Shown here piece by piece: positions 39,201 through 64,000 of a DNA stretch of 64,000 nt. This DNA is from Blastocladiella emersonii ATCC 22665. Taxonomy: Eukaryota; Fungi; Blastocladiomycota. The DNA is taken from contig JANHCV010000010.1 in assembly GCA_025594325.1 (NCBI GenBank), forward strand, positions 1,426,001-1,490,000, given 5' to 3'. The position numbers and the translations under genes are program-made. Numbering within the stretch: the first letter of the stretch is position 1; the number at the start of each line of letters is the position of its first letter. Below the pieces are notes generated by a model. The model made no database searches. It was not told the DNA's origin and saw only the letters and a program-made list of their open reading frames with translations.

Positions 39201-40994
39201 CCGGCTAAGAAGGGCAAGAAGTCGGCCGCGCCTGATCCCGACGCCGCGCAGCCCGCCGCGGCCGCGGTCCCCGATTCCGCGGCGCCGTCGGCTAAGCCGA
39301 AACCGAAACCCCGGAAACGGCCTGCGGCCACCGTCGCCGACGCGGATTCCGCGGACCCGGCCGCCGCAGATGGGGGCGGTGGTGGTGGCGACGCGGCGCT
39401 GGCGCTGGCGAAGCCGAAGCCGAAGAAGCGCGCGCGGAAGGCTGAGCCGGCTGCCGTCGAGACCGATGCGGCGGCGGCGCCCATGGGTGCAGTGGATTCG
39501 GCGCCGGTGGACGTCGCCGACGGCGCGCCGCCCGCGAAGCCAAAGGCGAAGCCCAAGGCGACCAAGTCGCGCGCCAAGAAGCCCGCCGCGCCGGCTCCCG
39601 CGCCCATCGTCGTGGTCGACCCGGCGGCGGGCCCGGGTCCCGCGCCGCCGACGGCCTCGCTCCCAGCAAGCCCCTCGAAACCGCTCCCGCACGTCGACTC
39701 GGCCGGATCGCTCGTCCCGCCGCAGCTCCTCCCGCTGCCGATGGTCGTCGCAGCGCAGGACACGGTGGTCGTGGCAGCGGGCGAGCTCGCACCGGTGGAT
39801 GGCGCGCTTCCACCACCACAGCCAGCCGTCGATGCGCCCGCCGCGAAGAAGGTTGTCAAGAAGCGCAAGCCCAAGGACCCGTCCACCTCGACGACCGCCA
39901 CCACCAACGGCGACGCGCACGCGGCCGAGCCCGCCAAGAAGCGCGCGAAGGCCAGGGCCAAGCCGAAATCCTCCGCGCCCGCGGACGTTCTCGACGTGGC
40001 AGCGGTACCTACCCCCGCCGCCCATGCGCCCGCGCCCGCTCCCGCACCGCCCGCGCCGCCCGCCGTGGTCCCGATACCCCTCGCGATCCCGCTCCCGCTA
40101 CACCCGCACCCGGACCCGGTGGCCCCGCCGTCCGTACCCGTGCCCGCCCCGCCGCGCGCCCTGACCGTCCGCTCGCTGCTCGCCCCGACCCCGAAACCCG
40201 CCGCCGCGCTGCACCTCCCGGCGACGGCAACGGCCGCCGACCTCGCGCCTGTGCCGTTCCCTCCCGCTGCTGCTTTCTCCACCGCCGCCACTTCGGCTCC
40301 CGCGTCCGCGACGGCGCCCGTCGGGAACGGCAGCGCGAGCTCGTCGGCCACGTCGCTCGGCGATATCGACGCCATCCTGAGCGAGTTCGACTCGTTCTTT
40401 GCCGGGATCCAGCAGCAGGCGACGAAGACGACCGCGGGCGCTGCAGTCGAGCCCGAGCCGATCGCGGTCCCGGCGCCCGTGAAACCGAAGCGCGCTACGA
40501 AACCCCGTGCGCCGCGCGCTAAGAAGTCGGCGCCCGCTGACCTGCCGCCGCCGGCCGTGACCACCGCTAACGCGCCCGTGACCCCGACCAAGCCCGCCAC
40601 AAAACGCCGTCGCGCTGCGTCGCTCACACCGTCTGCGTTGGATGCAACAGCGGCGGACCGCAGCCAGCTCCGCTCCGTTGAGTCGGCGCCACCGGCCGGC
40701 GTCCCTGCTACGGCCGAGGCCGAGGCGGGCGCGACGCCGCCAAAGAAGAAGTGGCCGCGGACCACCTCCACCTCCGCCGCAACGCCGACCAAACCGTCCC
40801 CCGCGGCAGTCGATGTGCGCGACTCGTCCGACGACCGCGCGTCAAAGCTCGCGCGCGCGCTCGGGCTGCAGCTTGGGCTGTTCGGCGGCGGCAGCGGGGA
40901 CTTGGTCGCCGCCGAGCTCGCGCGGACGCCGCAGGTCGGCGGTGGGGCTGCGGAGGCGAGGGGGATGTGGATGCCCGACGGCGCGGGGACGTAG
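36298..40994 (+). CDS. Very large low-complexity protein (polyQ, Pro/Ala/Lys-rich), 3 exons (36298-37333, 37395-38504, 38566-40994), 1524 aa, function unknown
   Basis: Two 61-nt canonical introns join three ORFs in frame (4575 nt). Multiple CAG tracts and KPKPK/KKRAK clusters; no globular domain recognised. Confidence 0.78.
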
Positions 40995-41424
40995 TGTTGT
41001 AGCGGATCATGTAAATGTGTACAGATATTTTATGTTATTAAAGCTCGTGTGAGTTCGTGTGAGGAGGGAGGGGTGATGGCCATCGACCCGACGCGGTGGC
41101 CACGGACACGTCGGAATGGCCGTGTTTGACGCGGCATGGCCCGCAGCTCAATCATCAAGTCCATAGGGCTCAAACACTTCGTAAGGAATAGAGCCAGAAC
41201 CAAAAATGCGAAAACGCTTCATGTTTATGAAGCTCGTCCAGTCGGAAAGGGTGAGGAAGCAGAGATGGTCATTGACGTGACGCGGCGGCCATGGACGCGA
41301 CGCGACTCGGTGAAGGCAATCGTTGACACCGTGGCACGCGGCGCGTGATGGATCGGAGCCCAATGTTCAGACTTTAAACGCTCAAACAGCAGGATGAAAG
41401 CAAAAAACGCGAACATGTTGGAGC

Positions 41425-43306
41425 TCACTTGAAGCTCGACTGCTTCTGCTCGCGTCTTTGAAGACGGTCGCCAGCGGATGTCTCTTCTTCACCGATCTCG
41501 CTCGCGTGGCCGCTGTCGTTGTCACTGACGACGTTGGCGCTCACGATCGGTCGGAAACCGGGCAGGTAAAGCTCGTCGCCCGCTGGCTCGCCAACCGTGC
41601 CGTCCGTCGCCTGGATCTGCTGCAGGTACTGGAAGAACTGGCCGTACTGGTCCCGTCGACCAGCATGGGTCGTACCGCGCGGCACAAGCGGGACGGTAGG
41701 GAGAAGCAAGCTCGCGCCGTCGTCGCCGACCAGCTGATTCGAGTAGTGGTCGCGGGCCACCATCGCGGCCGAGGACTCGCGCGGAGGAGCAGCGCGCGGA
41801 GCCAGCGACGCGGTCGCGTGAGGCGCGTCTATCGAAGCGACTGGCAACGACGGACTCGCGCTACCGCGACCAAAGACGTTGCGAGATGAGAGTCGCTTGA
41901 ACGCCAGGCCGCCCCGGGTCCGCTTGATAACGACAAACGCACCGCCGAGGACCGCGGCCACCGCGGCGCCGAGGACGAGCGGAACGACTGGAAACGACGA
42001 TGAATCAGGTGGAATGAGAGTCGGCTCACCCGGTACGTGGCCAGCCGAATTGGTCACTTGGGGTGATCGGGCCGCAGGCACGTTCGCGGTCGCAGCGAAG
42101 CCGTACGCCTGAGCGTGCTCGGCGGGGGTCGGCGGGGTAAAGGTCGGCGACCACTGGAACTCGAGGCCAGTGTCGTTCGGGACGATGGTGAGGACGTGCA
42201 GGTCAAGTTGGTCGCTCGGTTCCTACACGGGAGAGTCGTCAGCGTTCGGATTTATTCGTTCCGTTTCCGAGCGATCGTACCGCGACTCCGCCAAAGAAGA
42301 GGATCTGACTCCCAGCAAGCACGGACGCAAACGACCGAATCGACAGCGGCCCTTGGCCCGCGTTGATAATCTTGCCAACGGTCGCCGGACCCGAGCTCGT
42401 GAGTTCAAAGTACTCGATGAACGGCGTGCCGTCGCCGACGTTGATGGCATAGCGCCGCTTCTGGTCCGGAAAAGTGTACACGATGATTTGGTGCCGCGCC
42501 CGGCTGATATTGAGCGAGTGCGGGTACCTGGACCACGTCGACGTCGCGATATCGAACAGCCACGCCTCGGCGCCGCCTGACCATCCGCCCGTCAGCATCG
42601 CGGTCGTCGCGTTGAGGCGGACCATGGCGCCGCCGTTCCGCGCCGACGGGCCGCCGTTGGAGTCCGTCGGAACGCGAAGCTTGCCGTTGGCGCCGAGGAT
42701 CCGCAGCGTGGTGAGGCCCGGCCCGTTCACGCCCAGCAGGCCGCCAAAACAGTACATGGCGTTGTCCGACTCGGACGGCGGCATGGTCGGCCCAAACCAC
42801 TCCTGCACGGGAAGCGCCGCGGCCGACCTCGCACACCCGGTATAGTCCGTGTCGGTCTTGGCATCGAGCAAGCGCACCGTGTTCGCGGGGACACTGTACT
42901 GCACAACGGCCTGGTTGGGCGCCGAGGCGACGCCCGGCGGGCGGGACCAGCCCGACGTGAGCTCGACAAAGTACTCGCCGTCCTTTGCACCCGAGTACAC
43001 GAGCGGGATCAGTCGTGCGGCTGCCACGGGAAGCGCGGGTAGCGAGGTGACGGGTGGTTTGTCGATGGAGAAAGGCTTGCTGAGATTGTAGGAGACGACG
43101 GTGGCTAGCGGCTCGCCGCCGGGCGTGTTCTCGCCGCCAAAGATGTACACACGCTTCAAACTCGGAAAGTAGACGACCGCTGGAGTTGTGACGAGAGCGT
43201 GTGCGGGCAGCGTGACGTGGGCTAGAAAGACCATGAGCGCCGCGAGGAGCGCGGCAAGAGCAAAGCGCCGGGATGAGCCATAAGAAGTTTTGCAAGACTG
43301 CTGCAT
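41425..43306 (-). CDS. Type I membrane protein with kelch-like beta-propeller ectodomain, 2 exons (43306-42281, 42222-41425), 607 aa
   Basis: Signal-like FALAALLAALMVFLAHV; kelch GG motifs (VYIFGG, MYCFGG, MLTGG, ILFFGG); TM helix VVPLVLGAAVAAVLGGAFVVI followed by KRTR. 58-nt intron. Confidence 0.82.
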
Positions 43307-46300
43307 GGTGATGTGCGAGTACTCGTCCGGGGAGAGAGAGCGCGCACGAGGTCGGCGATGATGGGGACACCCGCTCTCGATTTTGCGGTGTGTGAGAAGC
43401 CGGCCCCACCGCATCGCTCGCCAAACGAGGAAGGTCGCATATACCGACCAATGCGGGCGCGCAGGTCGCTTCTCGTGACATGGCGAGGTTTCACAACGCG
43501 TCGCACTTGAAGGACGAGACGAGCATGGTAACAGTTGCGTGACGCAAACGGCAACCTTGGGACAAGCAGCGGCGCGGAAAGCCGACATGTTCAAGGGCTC
43601 CTCCAGGTTGCGGCAAGGCAGTGCGATGGTCAACAGTGGCTAGTGCCGCGGAAGCTTGTGGAACCGACGAAGAAATGGTTCGTGGCGAGAGCAGCGCGGC
43701 TGTTGGAGCACCGAACCTTGGCGCAGGTCGTAGGTCGGAGTGGGCGCAAGCCGGCCCCGCCGCGTCCGGTCAACGACAGCCTCGATCTTCGATCAAGCAG
43801 CGTTTCATTGCAGGGAGTGAGTGTGGTTGAGGAGACCAGTCGAGAGTTGAGTCGGAGGAGAAGGAGGGGAGCGGCGGGCAGCACGGCGGAGGGACTGCCT
43901 CGCCTCAGCGTCAGGTGATGCTTGAACGCGTCTCGCGCCGCGTCTCGCGCTTGAGCCTCCAAGCTCTACCCGTGGCAGAGTCACGTCGCATCTGAGAAGT
44001 GGTGAGGGCCATGAGCGTGCGGGAGTGAGAGTCGGGAGAGCCGAACTTGAGCGGTGAAAGGGCGCGACTCGGCCACGCGATGGCCATCAAGGCGGGACGG
44101 CGGCCATGGTCACGAAGACCCAGACCGCGAACCAGACCAGATCGAACCGTTCTGAGAGACTTGTTAGAGAGAGAGAGAAGACGACCGGGCGACACATATA
44201 AAGTAGCAACGCAAGCATTGTTCCAAAAAAAATGACCCGACCCAGACGCTCGCCGTGGAACCCCACACGGCAAGCGAGCGACCACGTCGAACGACACCCC
44301 CCTGTCCACGCACCGCGCACGCGCCGCGTCGCTCGACGACCACCACCCACCAAACGCCCGCATCGACCTCCGCACCGTCCTTGCGCCAAGTCCCGAACCG
44401 CTTACGCGCGTGTATCATGAGCACGGCGGGGAAGCGGGCCGAGGCACCGGAGACTGGTCGCGTATGGTCCAGCCGCCCGCAACAAAACTGCGTGCACGTC
44501 GATGCGCGGAGCCGCAACTGACGGCGAGAACCCGGACACCCCCAGTCGGGTACGAGTCCGGGCGCAGTTGGTCACGGACGGCTCGAGGCGCTGCACACAC
44601 ACCTCCACCGAATGGCACTGCTCGCGCGCGCGCAGGGCACGCGGGACCGGAGCGGTGCCAGCAGACTGCGACGAGACCAAACGTCTCTTCAGCGAAGGGT
44701 TGGGGAAGTCAGCCGCCCGCCCCCGGGTCGGCGACACTCCTTACTACCAACAACGGCAGCCCGCGGTGCAGTGGATCGGCGAGCAGCGAGGTGTGTGTGT
44801 TGCATGGGGTGGGGATGTGGATCGGAGCGACCGCGACAGGCGGCAGATGCGCGAGAAGAAGTGTCGTCGTCGTACACTTGGGATCGGGTTGCATGGGGCG
44901 GGAGCGGATGAGTGAGCAGTGTAGTGAGGGAAGGCTTGCGGGGTTCTGAAGAGCGAGAGAGCGGGGACGGGACCGGGGCGCGCGATTTGTACGCGGGCCG
45001 GGCCGGGGAGGCGGGGCGAGCGCGGCCGGCGCTGCACGCGCCCGCCCCGCGATTATGAAGGATCCGTTGCGCCAAGTGTGCCTCGTTCGCTGGGTGCCCG
45101 AGCACCGCTTCCGGCGGAACGCTCTCGCGCTCCGAAGCGCGCGCAAAAATGTGTCGCAGAAGAGTGGGAGACGCGTCTTTGCTCACCTGAAAATCACGTG
45201 TGCGTTTGGAGACATTTTTTTTTCGCAAGCAGGGAGACCGCCACACGTGCAGCCAGCACGCCGGTGCCGTCGATCCGCGAGTTTGATGAGAGGAACGAAC
45301 GCCGGTCTCGCAGGAGACGAGCCTGCCCTACATAACAAGTCTTGCTCAAAAAACCCCGGTGATGCGGCTCGGCGCAAGGCTGAGCCGTCACGCACGGCGT
45401 TGAGGGCTAGTTCGGGTCGACATGAGGAAGTGCTCGAACGGTGAGGCCGGGCCTGCCCAAAGTTACCGCCACTGGCCGGAGATCGAGAACGGCCGCTTGG
45501 ACGTTAGTTCAACAGTCGCACAGCGCCGCTCCGGTGGTGCGAGGCCACCGAACAGCGCCTCGCCAGTGAAAAACCGTCGAGAGGACGTCGAGAGGACGTC
45601 GGGGAGGCCAATATCGAGGGTAAAGTGCAAGGAAGAGTTGCTCGGCGTGAGGTCCACGAGCTTCTCAGGGGTTACGCCTGAGAAGCCGAGCAACACGCAA
45701 CATGTTCTGGGACCGAACGTGCGGCCGTCCATGGAATTCGAGGGAAAAGGGCGAGGACGAGGGATTGCATCAAGTGGGCTCGTCCTATTCATGTGCTGCA
45801 TCGCGAGGAGGTCAGTTCAACGGAGCGCGGACGGGATGCGCGGCGGCGTGAGAGTTCTGACGGAGTGGCGTTGCGCGTGGCCGGCGCCGTGGACGCAGCG
45901 CGTCTCGCTGATGGGCAGGAACCCGATTCAATGGCTCAAGTAGAACGAGACAGCACGGCAAGAAGTCTCGGAGGTTTCATGAAATACTCGATCCAACGGG
46001 TGCGGGTAGAGCCAAGCAGGTCCGAGTGAAGAGTCTAATTGAACGTGCCGCTTCGAGGAACATCACGCGGTACTGAGTCCACCGTGCCGCGTCAGCAAGT
46101 CTCAGGAAAGAGGTGAAGACAGCTCAACGATCCATTTTGACCAAGAAGATCAGGTAAATATGACCAACCGACGCGCGCGCCTCACCAGGCTCAGCACGCG
46201 CGACGACTAGTCCGTCCCGACGGCAGCTTAACTGAACAGTTGCTGCAAGTTGTACATGATCTCGCCAAGCTATTCATTGCGTATCGCGAGGGTCGGGGGA

Positions 46301-47850
46301 GAGCGGGGGCGCAGCGTGGGGCGATGAACGGGGAGCGGCGAGAAGTGGCGCAACAGGTGGCGCAACGCGACCGCTTTTGCCATCTGACGGCCCGTGATGG
46401 TCGCTGCCGTTCTCTTGAGACTCTGTCGCGAACTAGGCCATGTATCATGTCATGGGGGACTCGATGCATTCTTGTCCTGTGGGCTAGGCGACCACCTGCC
46501 GGCCCGGACTTGGCTCCCTTGCGGCCGATCTGACGCGGAGTGCTACGCTCGGCGCAAGGCCTGCCGGAAACCGAGCGAGCGCTAGGATCAGGCGAGGATT
46601 ATGCGTGAAGTGGTGTATCAGCCGACCTCGGTGTGTAAGCTGTGCAAGCTTGCTGGCCCTGACCGTGACGCTGGTGCTGGGCTGCTGCTGGATGCACACC
46701 AGTTGCTCTCGATCTACATGGCATCGACTGGTAACCGACGTCAACATTAGTAGGCCATCGATTCTGGCGTCTGATTCGTGACTTCGCTCCCAAATCTCGT
46801 CCGCCGCCATGAATCCTCCTCACGCACAGCTTCAGTCGCAGCGACTTGTTGCGTCGCTTCAAGGGCAGATGCCAGCCAACTTATTTGAATGATGACGGCC
46901 GGTGGTCTCTTGCTTCTTCGTAACCTTGGCCTCGCGCTCACCCACTGCACGCCGCTCGGCGTAGACGCAGCAGCAGCTCAAGCTCAGCACTCAGTCAGTA
47001 CATGGCCTCGAGTGTCTCCGCCTGTGAGCTCGTGTCGCGACGTGTGGAACCAGCGTGATAAGGGAACAGCTAGTTGACGAGGAGCTCTATGACCTGCCCT
47101 GCGCAACGTTCTCGAGGACGTGGATTCCAGTTCTGCCGCGCCGTTCCAGGCGCCGCCCGACCGTCCGCTGAACAGGCTCAACGATGGGCCCGACCCGCTT
47201 TGATCACGCCCGCTCGACGCGGCTACCGGTAATACCCAAGTTGATGCTTCTATTGTGATTCACGCACAATTAGATTGAAATAGTCAATGTTCGAGCCTTG
47301 TCTTGAGATGATACACTCTTACGACGGCCCTGCACCTCAAGTTCCACTCGCTCGAGACGGGACCGCGCCGCCAGACTTTACGCGCCGCGCCACTCACGTG
47401 AGCAGTAACCACGCGCTTTCGGTCGGGCGGTGCGTAAAGTACTTGTACGGTTCGCACGGTATGCAAAGCTTACTGACATGCGTTTGCTGAGCTTAGCAGC
47501 CCGATCATTACGCCCGCTGTCCGAATGCTGCGACGCCATACTTATGCGCAGGACTCGCCCGCGACGACGTTGTGTAAGGTCGAGTTCAAGGCTTTGCGCG
47601 CAACGCCATCGCCATTTTCAAGCATTAGCGGTGCCATCTGCGACTCGAATGAGAGATGGCGGCCGATGACCAATTGCCGTGTCCATCGCTCGCTCGATGA
47701 TTGATCGATGTGCCACTCGGAGCTCGCCTTTGAGCACACTCATTCAACTGGTTTGTCTCGACTGAAGGGGAGGCTGATCAAGTAGACACATGCTATTTAA
47801 ACTATCAGAATCAACAGCAGCAAAGGCCCGACTGATGTCGGCGGCCACGC

Positions 47851-49837
47851 TCAAACGTTCGCGTCGCCACGCTTCGGGCGGCGAGTCGGACTTGGGCTCG
47901 GGCGGGCAGTCCCACGGTCCGCACGCGTGCTCGACTTGTTGCCGGGCTCGACGAAATCGCGGTGGCCGCGCTTCGGGGTCGGAGCGGGCTTCGCTGCGGT
48001 GGCCGTAGCCGTGGACGGGGCCGTGGACGGGGCGCCGGACGTGGGCTTGGACTTGCCGCCGTTGAAGAGGGGGTGTTTGCGGTTGACGCGCGTCACCGGC
48101 TTGATGGGCGTCGAGCGAGGCGGGGCTCCCGCCGTCGACGTGGCCGTTGGCTGGGCGATCGGGGAGCCGTCGATGCGCTGGTTCGGGTCGCCGCCGAGCT
48201 TGAAGCTGAGCGCGGGCAGCGGCTGCTTGCCCGAGGACCAGATGTTGAAGGCCTTGTTGGCAATGACCGAGCGGATGTGGAAGTCGAGCGAGTGCTCGTG
48301 CGCGACCTCGACGTTGATGCCGCCCGACGCGCCCGGCTTGCCGTCGTTCCCCAGACCGGCCTTGCCGCCCGCCGACATGGTCATGCCGAGCGACGAGTCG
48401 AGCTCGAGCGCCAGGTCAAAGATCGGGATGCGCCAGAAACGGAGACCCACGCCGAACGCGGGGATGACGTGCGCCGCGATGCCCGCGCTGACCTGGCCCG
48501 AGAGCGTCGGCGGGTGCGGGCGGAGACGCATGTCGCCCTCGGCCTTGGCGATCGGCTTGCCGAACAGGCCCGTCTTGGACTCGACGCTCCACACGAACGG
48601 GTAGCTGAGCTCGAGGCCCGCCGACAGCTTGAGCGACGCCGCCAGCTCGTACGTGGCGGCCGCCTTGAGGCGCAGCTCGGGCGACATGGAGAAAATGCCG
48701 GGAATGTAGAACGGGGTCAGCGGCAGGACAAAAACCTCGACCGAGAACAGGTCGGCCTTGTGCTCCTTGTGCGCGCGCAGGAACAGGTCGAGGTTGGCGC
48801 CAATGTCGCCCGACAGCGCAACGCGGTACGTCTTGAGCGACGTGATGCTGCCCGTGGCCTCGAGGCTGAACGTCGCGCGGCCGTGCAGCGAGATGTCGGC
48901 GCCGAGCTCGGCCACGGACGTGTTGAGCAGCGAGATGAACGGCTTCAGCGGCTTGCGCTTCTTCTTGTCCCAGTTGACGGCGAGGTCCCAGCTGACCGAG
49001 TTGGAGAGGTCGCGGCGGGCGAGGTTCGCGCCCGACGACGACGGCATGTCGTGCTGCGCGACCTTGAGCGAGAAATCGGCAACCACGTCCTCGACGGCCA
49101 TCTTCTTGGTGGCCAGGACGACCTTGCCGGTGCCGTCAGCGGCGGCCTTGGGCGCGGCCGTGACCTCGCGCGTGGCAATCTCCTCGGCGCCGTCGCACTT
49201 CCACTCGCCGCCGACGATCACGGCCCACTTGCCCTGCGTCTTGGCCCACTCGGCGCTGGCGGCCGCGGCCGTCGCCGCGTCGTTGAAGGTGAGCGTCACC
49301 GACTCGGCCGAGCACTCGACCTTGGTGATCTGCGGGAAGTTGTCGAGGTTGACGGACGCCATCTTGGTGTTGAGGTCGCAGCTCGCGACCATCATGGCCG
49401 GCTTGCCGAACACGTTCTCGCGCGAAGGCACCTCGGCGCCGTACATGGCCTTGACGGTCATGACGGGCGCGAAGCTGTTGCGCTTGACGGGCATCGGGTG
49501 CATCATGTTCATGGCCTGCTTGGCCTTGGTCGCGCCGAGCGCGCTGCCCATGAACTCGCCATTCTACGATCGCGAGTGTGCGTGCGTTGGTTCAGCGTCT
49601 CGTAGTGTTACAGGTGTAGTTGCTCGAGAATAAGCGTACCTCGTGGGCGCGGAGGACAAACTTGTCGTCGGCGGGGTTGGCGGGCTTGCGAATGTACTCG
49701 GCCTCGGGGATCGGGAGAGGGATCTCGCGGGCATTGGCGGCCGAGGTGGCGAGCACAGGATCGGCGGCCGATGCGGCGAGGAGGGCGAGGGTCGCCGTGG
49801 CCACGAGGGCGAGCGAGAGGTTCGTGGTGGCGACCAT
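47851..49837 (-). CDS. Secreted beta-rich protein, DUF7029/DUF7223-like (left copy), 2 exons (49837-49640, 49563-47851), 636 aa
   Basis: Signal peptide MVATTNLSLALVATATLALLAASA; VNLDNFPQITKVECSAESVTLTFND; PLTPFYIPGIFSMSPEL; Pro/Thr/Ser tail. 76-nt intron. Family label recalled, not searched. Confidence 0.8.
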
Positions 49838-52049
49838 GGTTTCTACGGTCTAGCAGCGCGTGCGAGAGATGTAGGCGGTGGTGGAGTGTAGGAGGTTCGA
49901 GGAGGGTTGAAAGACTCAGGTGGGCTCCGGGCGGGCGATCTAGATGCTGTGGATGGAAGAGGCCAGCTCTCTAAGGATGTGCCATGCTTGCCAGGATTGG
50001 AGGCGGGCGGCGCGGCCTCTTTATCGTCCTCGGCCTACAAAACGCTTCAGCGACGACGTGCTCTGTACCGAGTCCAGAAACGGACGCGGCCAAGAACGTT
50101 TGCACGCGCATGACATGCGCAGCACGACGCGTGATGCCAGGCCTGATGCGCGACACCGTTTCATGGGCATGCGGACCCACTCATTGCCCTCTAGCGCCAC
50201 GGCAGCCCGCGTCGATTGTTCCGGATCCGCGCGTACGGCGAGCTGGGCACCAGCATCCGTGCCATCGGGAGCACCAGATACGCCGTCGCGTTGCTTGTGT
50301 TCTCGTGGCGCCAGCCCCAGGCGCATCCGTGAGCGCATGCTGCGAAAACAGTCGAAGCCCGGATCAAAGTCTCAGGATCCTTCTTTTGGCGGCGCCGCCT
50401 CATGGGGCTGTGATCGGACCGCTGATCCGGCCAGGCCCTGCTGAGCCACGCGCCACATCCAGGGGCTCGGAGCCGAACGAAAAGCCTCGGCCACCTGCGT
50501 CTGCGACTCTCCGGGGCTGATATGAATAACCTGGCTGACAAAGACGGTCCAGGTTCAACTGCCGGGTCGTTGGTGCGGCGACGTATTCTGGCGATCCCGA
50601 AAGGGCACGCGGAAGCGCATGGTGACCCATCACGTGTGTGGCGCATCGCGTATCTAAATGCCCATTCTGCGTCTAAGCCAAGCGCGGTCGTTCGAACCGC
50701 ATCCGGTTAATACGCCAGAACTTAGCGTGCGGCCCGGGAATGTCAACAGGTTTGTGCTTCAGTGCTTCAGGGTATCGGAGCGGCTCAAGCCGGCGGTGAT
50801 GGTCGATGGCGCGAGTTCGTCCGCAATCGTGAGCCAGCCGCACTCAATCAAGTCTACGGGGTCGCACTTTTTCGGAGTTTGTAGTCCACTTGTGCATTTT
50901 TGTCGAGTCGCTCGTCGCGCAGCGCGCCCGCGACGTGCGCTGCGTGCCCGACCTCTGGCAGTCGCTCGTCGACTCGACGCCGCCTGCCATCGCATCGCCG
51001 GGCAGCGAGCCGCGCTTGATCCCGTTCCGCCGTGACATTCATTGTGCAACTGCTCGCTGACCTCGGGTACGGTACGGCGCCGACTACCACTTGTTTGACA
51101 TGTGGGTCAAGAACAAAGTAACGAGGGTCACGGATGGACCGCGGTGAATGTATTTGTCGTTCAACACGCTTCCCATACTCGCGACCGCCGGTACCCGTCG
51201 TGCGCTGGCTGGTCCTTGGTCTTCTCGGGCTTCGGCAACCCGAGGCGAGGCGTATTGATGGTGGGCCGACTGCAACGCGAACGACGACGGACAGCTTGAG
51301 TTGAGCTGGGCCGACCGAGGCGGAACGCGGCGAGCGGCGGCGACGGCGACGGCGACACGATGCGATGCGGAAGGACGAGCGGGCGTGTGCTGGTGGCTGC
51401 AGTCGAACCTGGCCGCCGAGGACGAGACCGAGACCGAGACGAGCCGTTGTGCCCGCCATGATCTCGTTGATGGCACTCGCGGACGCTTAATCTTCTTGAA
51501 GGCAAAGGGCCGCCGCCGAGCGACTCGACGATGCGGTACGACAGCATGACCTTGTTGGGTACACGCGCGCTGCGGGACCTTGGTGAATCGAGCTACGCGA
51601 GGGTGAGCGTGAGCGTGAGAGTGAGCTCCTTTGCCCCGAGACGAGAGACAAGTCAGGACGCGGTACCTTGAACGGGCCGCGAAGCACGGCCATGGCCTCG
51701 GCCTGACTCGGGTGCTGCGTGACGTGAAGCTGTCGGCGGCACGAGCAGGTGAACAGGTCGCTGAGCGCGCGCGTCGTCTCGGAACTCGAAGATCATGCAC
51801 GCACGCACGGATGACGATGTCGGTGAAGATGATCTACACGCATGGCAGGCGAGGGTCTCGAGGTGAGCACGCGGTGGGGACCAGTCAAGAGTCGCGGGCA
51901 TCGGTGCCGCGCCGTACCTGCTGCTGCTGATACTTGCGAGGACTCGCGCTTGGGCTTGAACACACGGGTGCCCCACCGGTGCAGAGCGGGCGACGCATTC
52001 CCGACAGCTGGGCAAACGTTGATGGGGTGGTCGCCCACCACCGCCGGGC
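48538..52049. repeat. Left arm of large inverted repeat (part matched within the window; probably extends further left)
   Basis: Reverse complement of 60489-64000. All paired ORFs have coordinate sum 112538 with identical translations apart from one substitution. Confidence 0.97.
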
Positions 52050-52900
52050 AGCGCGCGCGTCGGAATCATGAATGCCGGCGCTCGTCGGCGCGACATGACG
52101 CGGCCCTCGCGACTGAGAAACCGACGCACGGTCTTGGCCTGCTGCAGCTGCGGGTGCAGGTGCAGGTACTGGACTCGGAGAACCACTCGAACCGCGCCGC
52201 GAGCCCGAGGAGTGTCTACACAAGCACAAGCACAAGCGTGAGTTGTTGGACTGCGACGCCGGAAGTTCCGATTGTAGTACGTTACCTTCGTGTGCCGCGA
52301 TGACGTCTGGATTCCGAGTAATCGACGCGGCGCGCGCGCACGGCGTGCACCCGGCCTTGTCCAGCCGCGCCGCCGCCGCGTGCTCACCACGTCCATCGCG
52401 CTCCGCACCACGACCACACACATGACACGCGCGAGGGACGCTACGGAATATAGTGCGGGTTCCACCACGTGTCGGACTAAGAAGTGTTTGAGCCGGGGCT
52501 CCCCCAAGCAGTGCGTACTGGGCGTCGTCCCTCGGCGCGTCATGCGAATGGCCGCAGCGCCGCGCGACCCGACGCGGCGAGCGAGCGGCAGCTGCTGCTG
52601 CTGCGACGTGTACCACCCATGGAGAATCGCCGCCCGAGACGTGCGTGATCGGGTCCGTCGAGCTCGAAGAGTCTACACGAGTACGAGAGTGAGTTGTCGG
52701 ATCGAGCCGCCGCTGGCTGCAGAGCAAAAGTACCTCAGCGCGTCGCGACGAGGAACGGGATCGAGGCGGCCGGCCTACACGATGTGGAGCGCGAGGGTGA
52801 GCGATAATGACCAGATCAAGCCGATCCGAGTCGCGAGCATCGCCGGACCAGCTGTTGCGGTGGAATTGCGGCAAAGTGGAGGTTGCAGTTGCTGGGCGGC
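52050..52900 (-). repeat. Inner, partly diverged inverted homolog of the 58590-59835 modules
   Basis: About 52050-52200 matches 59685-59835 almost perfectly. Further in, only patchy similarity, including the exact 28-mer GTGGTGGAACCCGCACTATATTCCGTAG (52441-52468 on minus). Confidence 0.85.
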
Positions 52901-53699
52901 CGACTCGCGGCTCGCCGAGTCGAGTGCGACGGCTGCGGACTCGGGCGGCCTGCGGATAGCGTGCGTCGAAGCCGCCGGTGCCGAAGCGGGTTGATCGAGC
53001 TGGTTCTGCGGATGCGGTCGATGCGTGGCATGAAGAGAGGGCGGTTGGAACGAGTGCTTCATTGCGAGGAGAGAGACCCGAAGCGAGTTGCGTCGAGTGC
53101 ACGGATCCAGCATCCCCCGCGTCCCGGCGTGCAAGGCGAGCGGTGCATGATACATCCAACGTGCGAGACGTTGCCAAGACTTGCTGGGTTTTCGTTTCCC
53201 GCGCTAGTCGGCTGAATCCAAAAAAGAGGAGACACGCGACGCGTCGGAACGCGTCCCCCGGTCGCGTGACGTGCGAGACACTTTCAACTTCGGGCGCTCA
53301 CACGTGTGCGCCGCGACGGACGCGCTGATCGCTTCCTCTGGCCCAGCTTGACCCACCTGTCCTGTGTGCGGCCGTCGTTGAAACTATCACGAAGCATTGC
53401 ACGGACCGAGTTGAGTCGAGTCCATCGATCGCTCGGCCCCGCTGAGCGGAAACCGCCTCCGTGGATCGTGCGTATGATGAGAGAGGAGCGTGATCTATTC
53501 AACGCGAAGTTTGGCGAGCCATGACGGCCCGCGGCGCGCATGGTGCGTGGAAGACCTTCGGGCCGTGGTGTGTCACGACAAACGCATCCGTGTGGTCGAT
53601 GGCGCGCCCGCACCCCGCGCAGATGGCGGGCGGCAGGGCGGGACTGGGCTGCTCCTGCGCCGCAGCGAGCATGACGAGCTTGGTCTACCATATGACACG

Positions 53700-55458
53700 A
53701 TTGTGAGCGACGTATCCGAGTGTGGGGTCGAGTGAAAGCCGCGTACCGTCATGTTGCGCTGGCGCCCAAGGGACTTGACGACCATGGTGCTCCAGCGGTG
53801 CCGGCGCGCGAGCTGCGCGAGCTCGTACATGAGCAGCGGCGCCGCACGCTCGAGCGCCCAGTCGCTGGGCAGCACGTTGGCGAGCTCGCGAAAGTTGACT
53901 ACGTCCATGTTCTTGACGGCGACCGAACGACATGAAGAAGCTCGAGTATGTGCCGCTACAACCCGGTTAACAGTCAGCGATGAGTCGGACGCGGCGCCAG
54001 GAACAACCCGTACCGCCCCGCCCGTCCATCTTGAGGAACACGTCGACCACGACCTCCAACGGCACCTCCTCGATCTCGCACACCCGGTGCGCGGACGGAA
54101 AAGTCGCCGGTCTCGGTCCCGAGCTGGCGCACGCGCACCATCCGGCCGGCCTTGAGCAGCGCGAGCCCGAACGCAAACTCGTCCGTGGGGACCAACCGCT
54201 CGCGTACCCTGCCCACCATCACCTCGTCGCCCGACCTCGCGACGCTAACAAAGACGGTGCAGGCCGCTGCGTGCGCAGCGATACAGTCGGAGAACGCGAC
54301 GTGGGCCGCGCGGTACTTGTTGAGAAAGCTGGCGACGCTGCCGCCCTCGGCCAAGTACGCGCGGACGAACACGTCGCGCGGCCCGTTCGAGCCCTCGAGG
54401 TACGCAACGAGCACCGCGTGGCCGGAGCGCCGTAAGTTGCGCCTCGTCAAACGTCGGGATCCATGTGCGCAGGACGTGCGACGCGAGAGCCCGGTCGCGC
54501 GCGTGGAGCCACTGGATGTCGGCCACACGTGGTCGGCGGCGTACTCGAGATCGGCGAGCAGCTGCGCGACGGTGCAGCGGACCGAGACCCAGCGCGGCTC
54601 GCTACCCGGTGCCGCGGTCGCGGGCGGCGTCAAGTCGGCGAGCGCGACTGCCACAGGTCGAGCACCCGGCGTACGTTGCCGGCGCACGTCGCCGGCGCGC
54701 TGCGCGACGAGCGACTCGGCAAACACGTGGCCGCGCGCGGCGAGGTTGTCGGCGAGGCGCTGGAGCTCGTCGCTGGAGCTCGTCGCTGGACAGCGAGAGG
54801 TTGCACACGAGTCGCCTCTGCGCCACCACCACCCCCTGCACGCCGCGGTCCGGCTTCAGCAGCAGGTGCAGCCGGGCGACCTCGACGGCTGGGTTCACGG
54901 CATCGGACGTGGACCGCCACACGTCGAGGTACGAGAGCACGAACCGGTTGACGCTTGTGTCCAGCGAAGCACGGAGCGACGCGACGGACGCCGGGTCAAG
55001 CGACGAGGGCTTGCCGCCGCAAAGCTTGTGCATGGCGAAATTGGCTGGGAGGGGCGGACGTGCGTGAGAGTCCGCTCTGAGGAGCAGTGGGCGAAAGGAA
55101 CCGTACCGATAGCTTCAAACGACTCGACCGTCTTGGCCCCGGCGAGGAACGCGGTAATCTTCTTGTTCTCGGGGCCGTACCGCAGATGGTCCGGGTCGGC
55201 CATGTGCATCAGGTACTGCGGCCCGAAGCGGACCTCCTTGAGCAGCGCGAGTGCCGCATCGTCCCACTGACTGGTGCGCGTTGAGCATGCCGAAATGCCG
55301 AACGCGATCTGCGTAACGACGGCGGCGCACGCCTCCTTGGCAGGCAGCGTGGCGCTCGCGAGGTTCAGCGCGACAGACTCCGTGCCTTCCTGCAGCAGGC
55401 GAGGTCGTTGAGGGCAAGGACCACGTCTATGCCACGCGGTGAGGTGAGTCCGCTTCAT
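53700..55458 (-). pseudogene. Frameshifted intron-containing gene of unknown family
   Basis: Protein-like segments in successive frames. 62-nt intron at 55106-55045. A 13-bp tandem duplication (54759-54790) shifts the frame, with further frameshifts near 54530, 54430 and 54130. Confidence 0.65.
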
Positions 55459-56299
55459 CTAGTGGGAGTAAGCTGTGCGTACCGGTGAGAACGGCAATCG
55501 CCTGGGACTCGGGTGGCGCCACGACCTTTGGGACGCGCTGCTGCGTGGGAAATGGACTTTTAGCGCGGGATCAGGACCGTCCACTGCCTCGGCAAGCGAA
55601 ACGTTAGCGTTCGGTCCGACGCAGGACAGAAAGAAAAGTCCGCACGTTGAAATGGTGCGCGATGACGGACCCGTCGAGCATCCCGAGATACACGACGTCG
55701 TCTACGGAGTTGATGGCGATACATCAGCCTCCCGCTGCTTTGAGATACGTGCAGTAACACTGACAGAGTACGTCGAAGCACGTTGTCACGTCGCGGGTGA
55801 CCCGTTCGCTCGGCGCGGCGCGGGTCCCCGCCGGTCGCGCAATGCTGGTCAGGATTGGGACCAGGTTGAACATGGCGCGCTCGAAGATAAGGTTGCAGCA
55901 AGTTGCGGTGGGTCAAAAGACCGATTCATGGAGGGTTCATGGCGGGTCGGACGAGCGACTGAGCGAACAGCGGCGCGACGTTTACAACGCGTCGTCCATC
56001 GCCGTCATTACATAACCGCCTCGTTGCCGGCGAGCCCCTCCAAGATCGTCGAAGACGGCTGTGCCAAGGGGGAAAAATGTCTCCAAGTGTCTCCAAAACG
56101 CGCGCTCGGGAGATTGTCTCGCGCCCACCACGTGACGGCGCGACGCGTCTTCTTCCCGCGTGTCTCCCTCGCTCGTTCCGCCGGAGCACTATTCGCCGCC
56201 AAGCGAGGAGGCGAGTGCGACCCGCGGCCTCTGCTTCTCGTTGCGCCGCGAAACAAGCCATGATACTGACTGCATCGCGCTCGCGGCGGGTTCGCTCGA

Positions 56300-59200
56300 G
56301 TTCACCATGCATCGACACCACTCTGGACAACCACCACCCGCCACCGCTCATACCTCGATCCATGACATCGACTCGAACGAACCGCACCGACGTCGACAGC
56401 CTCAACGACCGCGGTGGACCGCCGCCGTCAGCTCGCTGCCGCCGCTCGCGACGCGACGCGACGAGTAGGGCAGGGCTTTGGCCGGAGGTGCGCAGTCGTC
56501 GTCGTGGCTTGGACCCGCCTCGTCTTGACGCTAACTTCGGGTCCCTCCCGCGTGTAGGCGTGCCGGTTCGCTCCGGTGGTCAGGGACTCCAGGCTATATC
56601 AAGTCCAGCCCGATGATCGTGATCAAGCTGTCGCCACACCTCGCGGGAACCCGATCCTCAGCTTCCTCTGCGTCATGTTCCTCGTCATGATCCCGTTCCT
56701 CGACACGCTCGTCGACAGCTTCGAGTACGTGCCCCGGGAGCTCCGACCCGCGCCCGTAAGACCTACCAGAACCTGACGTAGCGGCTGGGCGCCGCCGACA
56801 TGTCGCACGAGCTGGTCGAGTTTACGCTGTGCTGGGTGGCGGACCGGATCTGGCCCATCGGCGCGTCACACCAAGGTACCTTTGACTCATGAACCAGCGA
56901 CGTAGTGGATTCGCGGCTTACGTATCGTGTGTGTAGATCCTCTGCGAGTGTCGATCCACGCGAGTCTGCCGAGTGCTCGACTGCTCTCCGAGATCAAGCT
57001 CGTGCGGTTCGACCTGATTCAGTCGACGCCAAGGTCGGCAATGCACTCGCGAACCGGGTACGACTGCATCATCCGCACCGGGCTCTCATCGCCTCTGATA
57101 TCATGATCCCCGTCGTCGTGTAGGCGGGTCGGGCTGGTGTTCGACGGCCATGATCCAGACTGGCCATCGAGGCCAAGCTGTCGTCGCTCGCCGGATCTCG
57201 GCCTCAACCTCAACACGCCATCGTGCAACATCACCGTATCCGTCATTGGTCTGCTCAAGCTCATCAAGCACGCGCGCTGCTCGGGCTCGACGATCATTTC
57301 GATTGCATCTCAGCCGACGCGGTGAGTTTTCGCTGCGCTCATCATCATCAAGTTCCCGTCGCGTGTCGTTCATGGTCGCCGTCCTGGCCCAAGTCTCTCT
57401 TCGAGGTTCCACTTCTCTCTCGTACTGCTCAGTGCTGCCGTAATGGGCCAAATCTCACTCGCTGATCCGTGTAGCTAGCTTCTCCGCGCGCGCAAGCTCG
57501 GCGCCATCACCCGGCGAGCGGCGGCCGGCCGTGGTCGTGGGTCGTGGTCGTGGTCGTGGTCATGGCCGGCGCGTATCCGCGTCGTGCTGCGGGCCCGTGG
57601 CGGCGGCCATTCGCTTGATACGCATGATGGGAGCGTAACCCTTGGTACCCACTGCTTGGCAGGTGGTGGGAATAGGTTATTCATGCTATACTCGAAGACC
57701 ATAGCGGCTCTCGCGTGTCTGGCGGGTGGTCGCGGCAGCTCTCGAGTCGGCGACCCAACCCTCGACAAGTGCAGGGCCGCCGTGATCGCGGATCAAGGTA
57801 CTACGTCGTCCGAACATTTCTTCATGACCTAGAAACTCACGTTCCGCTCCCCGGACTAGTAGGTTCCGCAAGCCCCGGCGCGGCATCAGCTCAGCTCGTT
57901 ATCGTGACCAACTCGACGGCTCGTCCGTCGTACGTCGCTGCTGGCAACATCATCGGGTTCGAGTCGCGTCCGGCGCCGAGCGCAGCGCGCATGCACAGTC
58001 GACTGGACCGCAGCAAACATGTGCTCTTCCCCCGACCTTTTCTGCCATCATGAAAGCCCTACTGACACTTGCGCTGGTACCGTGCAGGTTGTTCGAGGTT
58101 TCCGACGCCCCGCTCCTTCAAGTTTCGCTGCATCAGCTCGCGCCACGGCGACGCCAAGGGCGGCGAGTCGAGTCGTTCGTCAAGGTACTCGTTCACTCAC
58201 GCTCGAAACTCCTGCGATCGGACAACTGACGTTAGCTGATCCGTGTAGCTGCTCGAGGACATGATCCTCGGCGCCAGTCGGCCAGCTCAAGCTCGCTTGC
58301 TCGAGTCGTCGTCATGCAGCTGTGTCGTGGTGCGGGATCAGCGGCCACACTCGCTCGACCTGCTGCCCTGACACGCCGTCAAAGTACGCCCTGCCCTCCT
58401 GGCGGCACGTGATGGAAGGTCGGCGAGCTATATCATAGCGTCAAGGCGTCGAGCGACTGGCCGCGGTACGGCGGGTGGGTGACGATGTGGGTGGCGACGT
58501 CCTTCACCGCGAGACGGGGCGCGGCAGCGGCCGGCGAGGAAGCAGTTCACGGTCGCTCGACTTCTTGGCCACGGCCACGCGGCTATGGTCGAGTACTTGG
58601 CTACCGCAGCAAGGTACGCTTCTCCCGACTCGCTCTTGTCGTCGCGATCGGGCAAGGCAACTTACACTCGCTGATCCGTGTAGATTCTCAAGAAGAACAT
58701 CATCATCCGCGCCAGCCTGCTGCCGCTGCTGCTCGCCGCGTCGGGTCGCGTGGCGCCGCGGCCGTTCGCCTGACACGCCCCGAGGGGCGACGCCCAGTAC
58801 ACACTGCTTCGAGCGAGGCCGAGCTCAGCAGGTGGTGGAACCCGCACTATATTCCGTAGCGTTCCTCGCGCGTGTCAGGGCGGGCGGTCGCGGTGCGGAG
58901 CGCGATGGACGTGGCGAGCACGCAGCAGCGGCGCGGCTTGGCTCGAGCTGCATGCAGGTCGAGACTGCTCGCCGCGCCGTGCGGGTTCTCGGGTCGAGTA
59001 CTCGGGATCCGGCCCGGCCGTTGTCATTGCGACACGCGTAGGCGGAGGTACCGTGTTTCGGCCGGCCAGCTGGGCGGCGTCGTCATCGTCGTCGAGATCC
59101 GAGAACTCACGCGCCTCGTCGTGTAGATTACTCTTCAAGCGCGGTGCGGTGCGGTTCCGTTCGCTCGCGAGGACCGCGTAGCCGTGTCGTATCGCGCCAC

Positions 59201-61000
59201 GGCCATCCGACCGGCACGTCGGGGGGCAACGCCCAGTACACACTGCTTCAAGCGTGGTCGAGCTCAGCAGGTGGTGGAACCCGCACTATATTCCGTAGTG
59301 CCCCTCTCGCGTGTCTGGCGGCTGGTCGCGGCGCGGTCGGTGCGGTGCGGTGCGGTACGACGGACGACGCGGCGAACCGCGAGCCATCAAGGTTACGGCT
59401 ACGGCGGCGACAAGGGTACGCTTCTCACGAGTCGCTGTCGGTGTGATGATCGGGCACCAACTCACACTTGCTGACCCGTGCCGTGTAGAGATCCTCAAGA
59501 TGATCAGCATCAGCACCAGCTTGTGTCGCCGCTCGAGTGCTCAGATCCGGCTCTGACATTGCGACACGCCGAGTAGGTACCGCACATCCGTGACTGCTGC
59601 TGACGACGTCGCGGTCCAACAACTCGCTCACTCACGCTCGTCGGTTTTTTTGCTTGCTCGTGTAGACTTTCTCTCCTCGGCTCGCGGCGCGGTTCGAGTG
59701 GTTCTCCGAGTCCAGTACCTGCACCTGCACTCGCAGCTGCAGCAGGCCAAGACCGTGCGTCGGTTTCTCAGTCGCGAGGGCCGCGTCATGTCGCGCCGAC
59801 GAGCGCCGGCATTCATGATTCCGACGCGCGCGCTGTTCGAGTTCGAGTCCGGCGGATCTACCTCATCGGTGACGGCGGTATCAACAAGGGGTACGTACGC
59901 TCATAGCGCGGACATTAAGAAGCCACCGACCGCCCACTCACTTGCGCGCGCCTGACTGTAGACGGATCGGCGGCACTCGATGACTCGACTCGCGTCAGCA
60001 TCAGCCCACGGTCGCCGTCATTCTCCTCATCGGCCATCGGCATCGAGGCCGTCGTGACGTCCGCCGTGGCCACGGCGTCGATCGTCCGCTCGTGGTGGCT
60101 GGTACGCCTCACGACGGCGCAGTAACGCGGTCGCCCGCCGTGGCCGTGGCCGCGACCGCCCCCTTCGCTCGTTCGCTCGCTCGCCTGCGTGTAGATAGAC
60201 GCCCTGGTGCAGAGCCAGAGTACCCGCCCGGCCCTAGAACCCCTCCCTCGACACGCCCCTTCTTTGCTGCGGGGAAACGAGCTCCCGCGCCCCCCGCCGT
60301 AAGCACCGCCCGCACCTCCCCCACCATGCGCTCGTTCGCCGCGAACGCATGGTGCAGCGGGCCCGCTGTGTGGCGCGGTCAGGCAAAAGGGAGCTCGGCC
60401 GTGCGGAGGCGCTAACGAAGGGCGGCGAACCGCGTGGCGGCGCAAAGAGTACGTGGCTGTGCAACGGCCCATGGATGACCCTCGCGGCGCCCGGCGGTGG
60501 TGGGCGACCACCCCATCAACGTTTGCCCAGCTGTCGGGAATGCGTCGCCCGCTCTGCACCGGTGGGGCACCCGTGTGTTCAAGCCCAAGCGCGAGTCCTC
60601 GCAAGTATCAGCAGCAGCAGGTACGGCGCGGCACCGATGCCCGCGACTCTTGACTGGTCCCCACCGCGTGCTCACCTCGAGACCCTCGCCTGCCATGCGT
60701 GTAGATCATCTTCACCGACATCGTCATCCGTGCGTGCGTGCATGATCTTCGAGTTCCGAGACGACGCGCGCGCTCAGCGACCTGTTCACCTGCTCGTGCC
60801 GCCGACAGCTTCACGTCACGCAGCACCCGAGTCAGGCCGAGGCCATGGCCGTGCTTCGCGGCCCGTTCAAGGTACCGCGTCCTGACTTGTCTCTCGTCTC
60901 GGGGCAAAGGAGCTCACTCTCACGCTCACGCTCACCCTCGCGTAGCTCGATTCACCAAGGTCCCGCAGCGCGCGTGTACCCAACAAGGTCATGCTGTCGT
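56300..61000 (+). pseudogene. Decayed multi-exon gene with repeated exon/intron modules (weak ankyrin and ion-channel-like remnants)
   Basis: Many canonical intron-like units (58185-58248, 58614-58683, 59416-59488). Identical 14-mer GCTGATCCGTGTAG at 57461, 58235 and 58670; identical 28-mer at 58832 and 59271. Exon-like stretches are broken by stops and frameshifts. Boundaries approximate. Confidence 0.5.
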
Positions 61001-64000
61001 ACCGCATCGTCGAGTCGCTCGGCGGCGGCCCTTTGCCTTCAAGAAGATTAAGCGTCCGCGAGTGCCATCAACGAGATCATGGCGGGCACAACGGCTCGTC
61101 TCGGTCTCGGTCTCGTCCTCGGCGGCCAGGTTCGACTGCAGCCACCAGCACACGCCCGCTCGTCCTTCCGCATCGCATCGTGTCGCCGTCGCCGTCGCCG
61201 CCGCTCGCCGCGTTCCGCCTCGGTCGGCCCAGCTCAACTCAAGCTGTCCGTCGTCGTTCGCGTTGCAGTCGGCCCACCATCAATACGCCTCGCCTCGGGT
61301 TGCCGAAGCCCGAGAAGACCAAGGACCAGCCAGCGCACGACGGGTACCGGCGGTCGCGAGTATGGGAAGCGTGTTGAACGACAAATACATTCACCGCGGT
61401 CCATCCGTGACCCTCGTTACTTTGTTCTTGACCCACATGTCAAACAAGTGGTAGTCGGCGCCGTACCGTACCCGAGGTCAGCGAGCAGTTGCACAATGAA
61501 TGTCACGGCGGAACGGGATCAAGCGCGGCTCGCTGCCCGGCGATGCGATGGCAGGCGGCGTCGAGTCGACGAGCGACTGCCAGAGGTCGGGCACGCAGCG
61601 CACGTCGCGGGCGCGCTGCGCGACGAGCGACTCGACAAAAATGCACAAGTGGACTACAAACTCCGAAAAAGTGCGACCCCGTAGACTTGATTGAGTGCGG
61701 CTGGCTCACGATTGCGGACGAACTCGCGCCATCGACCATCACCGCCGGCTTGAGCCGCTCCGATACCCTGAAGCACTGAAGCACAAACCTGTTGACATTC
61801 CCGGGCCGCACGCTAAGTTCTGGCGTATTAACCGGATGCGGTTCGAACGACCGCGCTTGGCTTAGACGCAGAATGGGCATTTAGATACGCGATGCGCCAC
61901 ACACGTGATGGGTCACCATGCGCTTCCGCGTGCCCTTTCGGGATCGCCAGAATACGTCGCCGCACCAACGACCCGGCAGTTGAACCTGGACCGTCTTTGT
62001 CAGCCAGGTTATTCATATCAGCCCCGGAGAGTCGCAGACGCAGGTGGCCGAGGCTTTTCGTTCGGCTCCGAGCCCCTGGATGTGGCGCGTGGCTCAGCAG
62101 GGCCTGGCCGGATCAGCGGTCCGATCACAGCCCCATGAGGCGGCGCCGCCAAAAGAAGGATCCTGAGACTTTGATCCGGGCTTCGACTGTTTTCGCAGCA
62201 TGCGCTCACGGATGCGCCTGGGGCTGGCGCCACGAGAACACAAGCAACGCGACGGCGTATCTGGTGCTCCCGATGGCACGGATGCTGGTGCCCAGCTCGC
62301 CGTACGCGCGGATCCGGAACAATCGACGCGGGCTGCCGTGGCGCTAGAGGGCAATGAGTGGGTCCGCATGCCCATGAAACGGTGTCGCGCATCAGGCCTG
62401 GCATCACGCGTCGTGCTGCGCATGTCATGCGCGTGCAAACGTTCTTGGCCGCGTCCGTTTCTGGACTCGGTACAGAGCACGTCGTCGCTGAAGCGTTTTG
62501 TAGGCCGAGGACGATAAAGAGGCCGCGCCGCCCGCCTCCAATCCTGGCAAGCATGGCACATCCTTAGAGAGCTGGCCTCTTCCATCCACAGCATCTAGAT
62601 CGCCCGCCCGGAGCCCACCTGAGTCTTTCAACCCTCCTCGAACCTCCTACACTCCACCACCGCCTACATCTCTCGCACGCGCTGCTAGACCGTAGAAACC
62701 ATGGTTGCCACCACGAACCTCTCGCTCGCCCTCGTGGCCACGGCGACCCTCGCCCTCCTCGCCGCATCGGCCGCCGATCCTGTGCTCGCCACCTCGGCCG
62801 CCAATGCCCGCGAGATCCCTCTCCCGATCCCCGAGGCCGAGTACATTCGCAAGCCCGCCAACCCCGCCGACGACAAGTTTGTCCTCCGCGCCCACGAGGT
62901 ACGCTTATTCTCGAGCAACTACACCTGTAACACTACGAGACGCTGAACCAACGCACGCACACTCGCGATCGTAGAATGGCGAGTTCATGGGCAGCGCGCT
63001 CGGCGCGACCAAGGCCAAGCAGGCCATGAACATGATGCACCCGATGCCCGTCAAGCGCAACAGCTTCGCGCCCGTCATGACCGTCAAGGCCATGTACGGC
63101 GCCGAGGTGCCTTCGCGCGAGAACGTGTTCGGCAAGCCGGCCATGATGGTCGCGAGCTGCGACCTCAACACCAAGATGGCGTCCGTCAACCTCGACAACT
63201 TCCCGCAGATCACCAAGGTCGAGTGCTCGGCCGAGTCGGTGACGCTCACCTTCAACGACGCGGCGACGGCCGCGGCCGCCAGCGCCGAGTGGGCCAAGAC
63301 GCAGGGCAAGTGGGCCGTGATCGTCGGCGGCGAGTGGAAGTGCGACGGCGCCGAGGAGATTGCCACGCGCGAGGTCACGGCCGCGCCCAAGGCCGCCGCT
63401 GACGGCACCGGCAAGGTCGTCCTGGCCACCAAGAAGATGGCCGTCGAGGACGTGGTTGCCGATTTCTCGCTCAAGGTCGCGCAGCACGACATGCCGTCGT
63501 CGTCGGGCGCGAACCTCGCCCGCCGCGACCTCTCCAACTCGGTCAGCTGGGACCTCGCCGTCAACTGGGACAAGAAGAAGCGCAAGCCGCTGAAGCCGTT
63601 CATCTCGCTGCTCAACACGTCCGTGGCCGAGCTCGGCGCCGACATCTCGCTGCACGGCCGCGCGACGTTCAGCCTCGAGGCCACGGGCAGCATCACGTCG
63701 CTCAAGACGTACCGCGTTGCGCTGTCGGGCGACATTGGCGCCAACCTCGACCTGTTCCTGCGCGCGCACAAGGAGCACAAGGCCGACCTGTTCTCGGTCG
63801 AGGTTTTTGTCCTGCCGCTGACCCCGTTCTACATTCCCGGCATTTTCTCCATGTCGCCCGAGCTGCGCCTCAAGGCGGCCGCCACGTACGAGCTGGCGGC
63901 GTCGCTCAAGCTGTCGGCGGGCCTCGAGCTCAGCTACCCGTTCGTGTGGAGCGTCGAGTCCAAGACGGGCCTGTTCGGCAAGCCGATCGCCAAGGCCGAG
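60489..64000. repeat. Right arm of large inverted repeat (runs off the window end)
   Basis: Reverse complement of 48538-52049. Confidence 0.97.
62701..64000 (+). CDS. Secreted DUF7029/DUF7223-like protein (right copy; exon 62701-62898, exon 62975 to beyond the window end)
   Basis: Same sequence as the 49837-47851 gene over the visible part except synonymous GTT versus GTC at codon 2. Confidence 0.8.

Follow-up and report, generated by a model that had tools for sequence, protein, structure and literature searches.

A gene-bearing palindrome with near-identical arms and graded edges in the zoosporic fungus Blastocladiella emersonii, probably maintained by arm-to-arm gene conversion

How two long inverted copies of the same DNA, facing each other across several kilobases of unique sequence, come to be almost free of differences is the question raised by a locus in the genome of the zoosporic fungus Blastocladiella emersonii ATCC 22665. 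The locus lies in a 64,000-nucleotide stretch of contig JANHCV010000010.1 (assembly GCA_025594325.1), referred to here as the window, where subtracting 1,426,000 from a position in the record gives the window position; flanking DNA from the same contig was added beyond the window, giving readable sequence up to window coordinate 81113. A previous sequence-only reading of the window had described the inverted repeat and offered two explanations, a very recent inverted duplication or a palindrome kept homogeneous by conversion between its arms. The older, graded inverted homology found beyond both ends of the arms favors the conversion-kept palindrome and disfavors the very recent duplication.

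The inverted repeat was recovered as that reading had described it, with positions 48538-52049 matching the reverse complement of 60489-64000 over 3512 bases, without insertions or deletions (indels), with one mismatch (G at 49832, partner 62706) and a constant coordinate sum of 112538, and the same match was returned by repeat finding and by blastn. Because of the quality of the match, a chance origin is excluded. The expectation that the arms run past the end of the window was also borne out: the ungapped match extends from the inner edge at 52049/60489 out to ~40460/72078, such that the near-identical arms are ~11.5 kb each, not 3.5 kb. Over the 11,463 bases compared without gaps from the inner edge, the arms differ by 1 mismatch and 0 indels (0.009% divergence); a second mismatch occurs at 40586/71952 and differences cluster from 40440 outward. 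Between the near-identical arms, the reported spacer length of 8.4 kb holds, with weaker colinear inverted homology reaching ~650 bp further inward and leaving a unique core of ~6.4 kb as delimited with blastn. The whole palindrome measures ~32 kb and is located 237 kb from the end of the 1.74-Mb contig, and the telomere motif AAACCT is absent from the 81 kb examined.

At both edges of the near-identical arms, the homology continues in a graded form. On the outer side, identity declines from 100 to 93 to 80% and then to 76-78% over ~300 bp, with indels appearing, and the homology ends near 40253/72279. On the inner side, near-identity ends precisely where the right side has a 654-bp segment that the left side lacks (59836-60488); beyond it, colinear inverted homology continues for 182 bp at 96% and then in blocks of 84, 76, and 77%, down to 52703/59096. 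Along a single colinear inverted register, divergence falls into three classes: 0.009% in the near-identical stretch, 2-7% in the adjacent zones (96% identity over 182 bp for the inner zone, 93-98% in 60-bp bins for the outer zone), and 16-24% in the distal zones. If the 182-bp inner zone had diverged at the rate of the near-identical stretch, at least three mismatches would be seen there with a probability of 7e-7.

This pattern is probably the result of an old inverted duplication, the arms of which have been kept alike by repeated arm-to-arm gene conversion that ended at heterologies. The original inverted duplication would be old and at least 12.4 kb long; since then, repeated repair or copying between the arms (intrachromosomal, non-allelic gene conversion) would have kept ~11.5 kb of it, with two intact gene pairs, identical. 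Conversion tracts would end where the arms mismatch, at the 654-bp indel on the inner side and at the onset of indels on the outer side, and the stretches just past the tract ends would have escaped conversion for progressively longer, generating the stepwise divergence. The step from 99.99% to 96% exactly at the 654-bp heterology is expected if heterology ends conversion tracts. From this arrangement of divergence along the locus, we infer conversion as the mechanism, its recurrence, and the erosion of the converted domain at its edges. A crossover accompanying conversion would invert the core as a passive by-product, with no programmed switch involved, and flipping of the spacer into two isomers may follow, as is reasonable for long inverted repeats.

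The same arms could be alike for lack of time, if an inverted segmental duplication occurred once, very recently, and conversion played no part. This explanation is in keeping with one substitution and 0 indels in 11.5 kb and with a right arm that ends in a gene fragment, as a copy would. A fresh copy is expected to have sharp ends, however, and here both ends continue colinear, at 96% and then at 76-84%. To account for this edge homology, a recent duplication would require an older inverted duplicate at the same place, and the sharp step sits exactly on the 654-bp heterology. Because at least three divergence classes occur in one register, a single fresh duplication cannot yield the pattern, while an old duplication that was repeatedly homogenized can; we regard a recent event without conversion as unlikely. 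Judging from gene content, the right arm is the derived copy at its outer end: of a gene found whole on the left, it retains just a 3' fragment. As this outer breakpoint lies inside coding sequence and the right copy is a fragment with upstream stop codons, the origin was a duplication and not a mobile element with defined ends. A transposable element of the long terminal inverted repeat or foldback type was considered and rejected, as the outer ends, which would be sharp in such an element, fade gradually inside coding sequence. Apart from the cargo coding sequence, the arm DNA did not recur in ~145 kb of other B. emersonii DNA.

A further explanation is that the palindrome is an artefact, either a fold-back or chimeric join or a set of mis-joined haplotigs. 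The assembly was built from PacBio high-fidelity (HiFi) reads (mean length, 10.5 kb) using the La Jolla Assembler, purge_dups, and Pilon, and arms of 11.5 kb exceed the mean read in contigs that were both purged and polished. Based on the assembled junctions, two physical copies must exist, because the four junctions (two inner and two outer) are all distinct in sequence and the flanks are unrelated genes, such that the arms are not alleles. Also counting against an artefact, the spacer is unique and 6.4-8.4 kb in length, compared to zero in missed-adapter chimeras, and the region inside the arms holds decayed palindromic remnants and a one-sided tandem duplication, neither of which is an artefact product. 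The retention of the variant and of the 96% zone indicates that the assembler did not collapse differences, and an origin in the assembly process is very unlikely.

Several points weigh against the conversion explanation. It is drawn from one sequence of a single strain, and much the same picture would arise if an older palindrome had undergone one long, recent conversion or re-duplication plus one intermediate event, so that conversion may or may not be ongoing. The weakest blocks of homology span just 45-70 bp, at 76-84% identity, in DNA of 65% GC, and those identity percentages of the edge zones that come from global alignment are inflated by gaps. Pilon polishing with 65-bp Illumina reads could have erased a few true differences between the arms. 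As the mean HiFi read does not reach across an arm, the core orientation depends on the few reads that are long enough or on the single variant.

Two additional observations concern the inner edge. The right side of the core, and only that side, contains a tandem duplication (58223-59336; period, ~436-439 bp) for which the left side has a single copy (52363-52592). The duplicated pairs are 58736-58898 with 59174-59336 (82% identity) and 58223-58269 with 58658-58704, and this ~438-bp duplication creates a second inverted match at 58719-58938. The 654-bp segment was evaluated as a possible transposon and rejected, as it lacks a target-site duplication, terminal repeats, and another copy in the ~145 kb examined.

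Table 1. Features of the palindrome in window coordinates; positions above 64000 are in the added flanking DNA.
Feature	Position	Strand	Remarks
poly-Q gene, 3' end (~245 codons) in the left homologous zone	40253-40994	+	
Left outer graded zone	40253-40459		older inverted homology to ~72079-72279
Left arm, near-identical	40460-52049		1 mismatch in 11,463 bases and a second at 40586
Kelch-repeat gene P0005 (H9P43_007955), 438 aa, left copy	41425-43234	-	
Secreted DUF7029/DUF7223 gene P0001, 636 aa, left copy	47851-49837	-	transcribed away from the spacer
Sole arm difference within the window	49832 (partner 62706)		codon 2 of the DUF7029 gene, GTC vs GTT, synonymous, CpG vs TpG
Left inner zone	52050-52703		older inverted homology, 96% over 182 bp, then 84, 76, and 77%
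Unique core, ~6.4 kb	52704-59095		no further inverted homology
Annotated gene model in the spacer, 534 aa	52735-55873	-	no family match
Right inner zone	59096-59835		older inverted homology, adjoins the ~438-bp tandem duplication
One-sided 654-bp segment	59836-60488		right side only
Right arm within the window	60489-64000		goes on to ~72078 (near-identical) and ~72279 (graded)
DUF7029/DUF7223 gene, right copy	62701-64000 in the window, to 64687	+	product identical to that of the left copy
Kelch gene, right copy	~69304-71113	+	identical product; outside the window
poly-Q gene fragment, right arm	~71544-72279	-	outside the window; stop codons precede it

From the outside inward, each arm possesses the 3' end of a poly-Q gene, a Kelch gene, 4.6 kb without genes, the DUF7029/DUF7223 gene, and 2.2 kb with a weak coding signal (Table 1). 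Both of the intact arm genes point outward from the center and have a very strong codon bias (GC content at third codon positions, GC3, 0.88-0.98). The secreted-protein gene reported in the arms by the sequence-only reading is present and intact in both as the DUF7029/DUF7223 gene, with identical products; the annotated 636-aa product corresponds to a raw 566-aa open reading frame (ORF) plus an extra 5' exon and has a signal-peptide-like N-terminus and a tail rich in Pro, Thr, and Ser. The same reading had described the inner 2.2 kb as partly pseudogenic, for which no confirmation was obtained, with 0 Pfam matches and weak periodicity. As a separate observation, the gene-less stretch (43235-47850 and its copy in the right arm; GC 0.61) has no gene model, Pfam match, or clear codon periodicity along its 4.6 kb and is unusually long for the gene-dense B. 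emersonii genome.

The DUF7029/DUF7223 family has 154 representatives at E <= 0.001, and B. emersonii has three 70%-identical paralogues of the arm gene at other loci, situated among housekeeping genes and none of them in palindromes. Because these paralogues lie outside palindromes and share only coding sequence with the arms, at 77% nucleotide identity, the identity of the arms is not a property of the family as a whole. A confident AlphaFold model of the protein (predicted local distance difference test, pLDDT, 88.9; predicted template modeling score, pTM, 0.84) is nearly all beta with very long strands and resembles many uncharacterized predicted proteins in clusters of the AlphaFold database (template modeling score up to 0.83). 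No solved structure matched the model (Foldseek best E 0.02; VIA-align Z <=6), though its C-terminal part has a faint similarity to beta-barrel translocator domains. The literature search returned no paper mentioning DUF7029 or DUF7223.

The poly-Q gene is complete on the left only, with a 1524-aa product, and its last ~190 codons lie within the near-identical arm, where they would be exposed to conversion from the dead fragment on the right. In the graded zone, the differences within this gene are spread evenly across codon positions (5:6:6), which fits a dead fragment on the right, as judged from the substitutions, and also marks the right arm as derived at this end. The gene model (35962-40994, + strand) includes long CAG/poly-Q tracts (direct-repeat family D1, 36816-37893) and has no Pfam domain.

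Within the spacer, the claim that only pseudogenes are present could not be established, as a 534-aa gene model is annotated there and part of it is strongly codon-periodic. The model requires introns of ~1.5 kb, its strong GC3 periodicity is confined to the region around 54100-54700, no Pfam match was found for it, and the best spacer ORF produced no lead in a protein-atlas search. The model may represent a gene or a decaying gene. The strongly codon-periodic part also contains two 13-bp tandem duplications (54666-54698 and 54758-54790; 2.5 copies each), and a GC3 phase change nearby may mean that the model bridges frame breaks with introns. A 188-bp stretch of the arms (50899-51071; 61467-61639) is 75% identical to 54540-54723, the best-coding region of the spacer model, and this similarity suggests that the arms contain a decayed fragment of a paralogue of the spacer gene; tblastx of the spacer against the arm returned nothing beyond it.

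A unique, gene-poor core between homogenized inverted repeats could also mean that the inverted repeats serve a function, as a programmed flip-flop switch or as a centromere with a central core. In inverted-repeat centromeres of the Schizosaccharomyces pombe, Candida tropicalis, or Komagataella type, a gene-free core and repeats bind CENP-A, with one such centromere per chromosome; the centromeres of the Blastocladiomycota are, to our knowledge, uncharacterized. The B. emersonii genome paper proposes a minimum of 6 candidate chromosomes based on telomere motifs. The intact, strongly codon-biased genes of the arms are unlike centromeric repeats, and the GC content of the core and arms (0.64-0.65) resembles that of the surroundings. 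A switch fits no better, as both genes in each arm face outward and inversion of the core leaves their context unchanged. Further, the absence of a recombinase or transposase inside the palindrome, as put forward previously, was upheld in the larger ORFs of the arms and spacer, which have no recombinase, transposase, or integrase Pfam domain, and Pfam scans of 30 ORFs from the spacer, the inner arm, and the 4.6-kb gene-less stretch returned no matches. Collectively, a dedicated role as a switch or centromere seems most improbable.

The window as a whole has a GC content of 66% and sparse long ORFs, and scans of it identified no tRNA genes or Rfam matches. To the left of the palindrome are ordinary genes (Torus/RRM, SRP19, and Complex1_30kDa), while to the right are a DUF4470 ORF and then a 963-aa ORF (75264-78155, + strand) ~3 kb outside the right arm with a weak match to PIF1-like helicase/AAA (E 1e-4). 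This is the nearest ORF with a mobile-element-like character and no link between it and the palindrome was found. A wider, older palindrome was considered based on two inverted DUF4470 ORFs (29769-31355, - strand; 73213-74655, + strand) and rejected: the two are 43% identical over 135 residues and the neighboring ORFs are unrelated. As the DUF4470 ORFs are distant paralogues with unrelated neighbors, the palindrome does not reach that far.

The best-known examples of large palindromes kept identical by conversion come from sex chromosomes and from a small number of animals. The literature search returned no description of such palindromes in zoosporic fungi, and the words 'palindrom' and 'inverted' are absent from the B. 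emersonii genome paper. The locus displays signs of long-term maintenance in a single sequence, namely near-identical arms, bounds at heterologies, and flanking homology that is progressively older. For practical purposes, knock-outs, read mapping, and expression counts all have to take account of two exactly duplicated gene pairs, a functional poly-Q gene may have its 3' end co-converted with a dead fragment, and users of the reference assembly should not assume that its core orientation is fixed. A broader and tentative proposal, which we consider possible but doubtful, is that B. emersonii runs a genome-wide homogenization of palindromes that are long-lived, conversion-kept, and have cores flipping between two orientations. 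If true, the organism would have a standing means to correct or fix mutations in duplicated genes, and the eroding edges at this locus would be internal evidence for an old, recurrent process and not a recent burst of duplication.

The locus is a familiar kind of structure. Arms at least 99.9% identical over kilobases, a unique spacer, and intact genes in both arms, the features of a Y-type palindrome, were all found, a likeness to the human and ape sex-chromosome palindromes with their kilobase arms of >99.9% identity, unique spacers, and genes present once per arm. Classically, the arms of such a palindrome resemble each other more within a species than orthologous arms do between species, an identity far beyond what the age of the duplication would permit. 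The arms of Y palindromes are tens of kilobases or more in length, while those of B. emersonii, at 11.5 kb, are much shorter and occur in a zoosporic fungus, not on a sex chromosome. Further, both edges of the B. emersonii palindrome are graded, not sharp, and conversion is read from one sequence and not from population or cross-species data. For human Y palindromes, arm-to-arm conversion at >99.9% identity is established, with multi-kilobase conversion and rare inversions described for palindrome P6 (PMC3723533).

Outside of sex chromosomes, long inverted repeats with gene pairs in Caenorhabditis have a structure conserved above their sequence, which was taken as active maintenance (Zhao et al. 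2007, PMC1803023); the B. emersonii palindrome belongs to a different phylum and is known from one genome. In the asexual animal Folsomia candida, where several gene-bearing palindromes occur in one genome, palindromic collinear gene blocks have been discussed as substrates for gene conversion (PMC5490193, in which the bdelloid rotifer Adineta vaga, also asexual, is cited). Unlike those blocks, for which the synonymous divergence (Ks) of the Dscam2 palindrome is ~0.2, the arms in B. emersonii are virtually identical, and the colinear flanking homology at 96% and 76-84% beside arms at 99.99% gives a positive proxy, within the locus and from a single genome, for arms more alike than the age of the duplication would allow.

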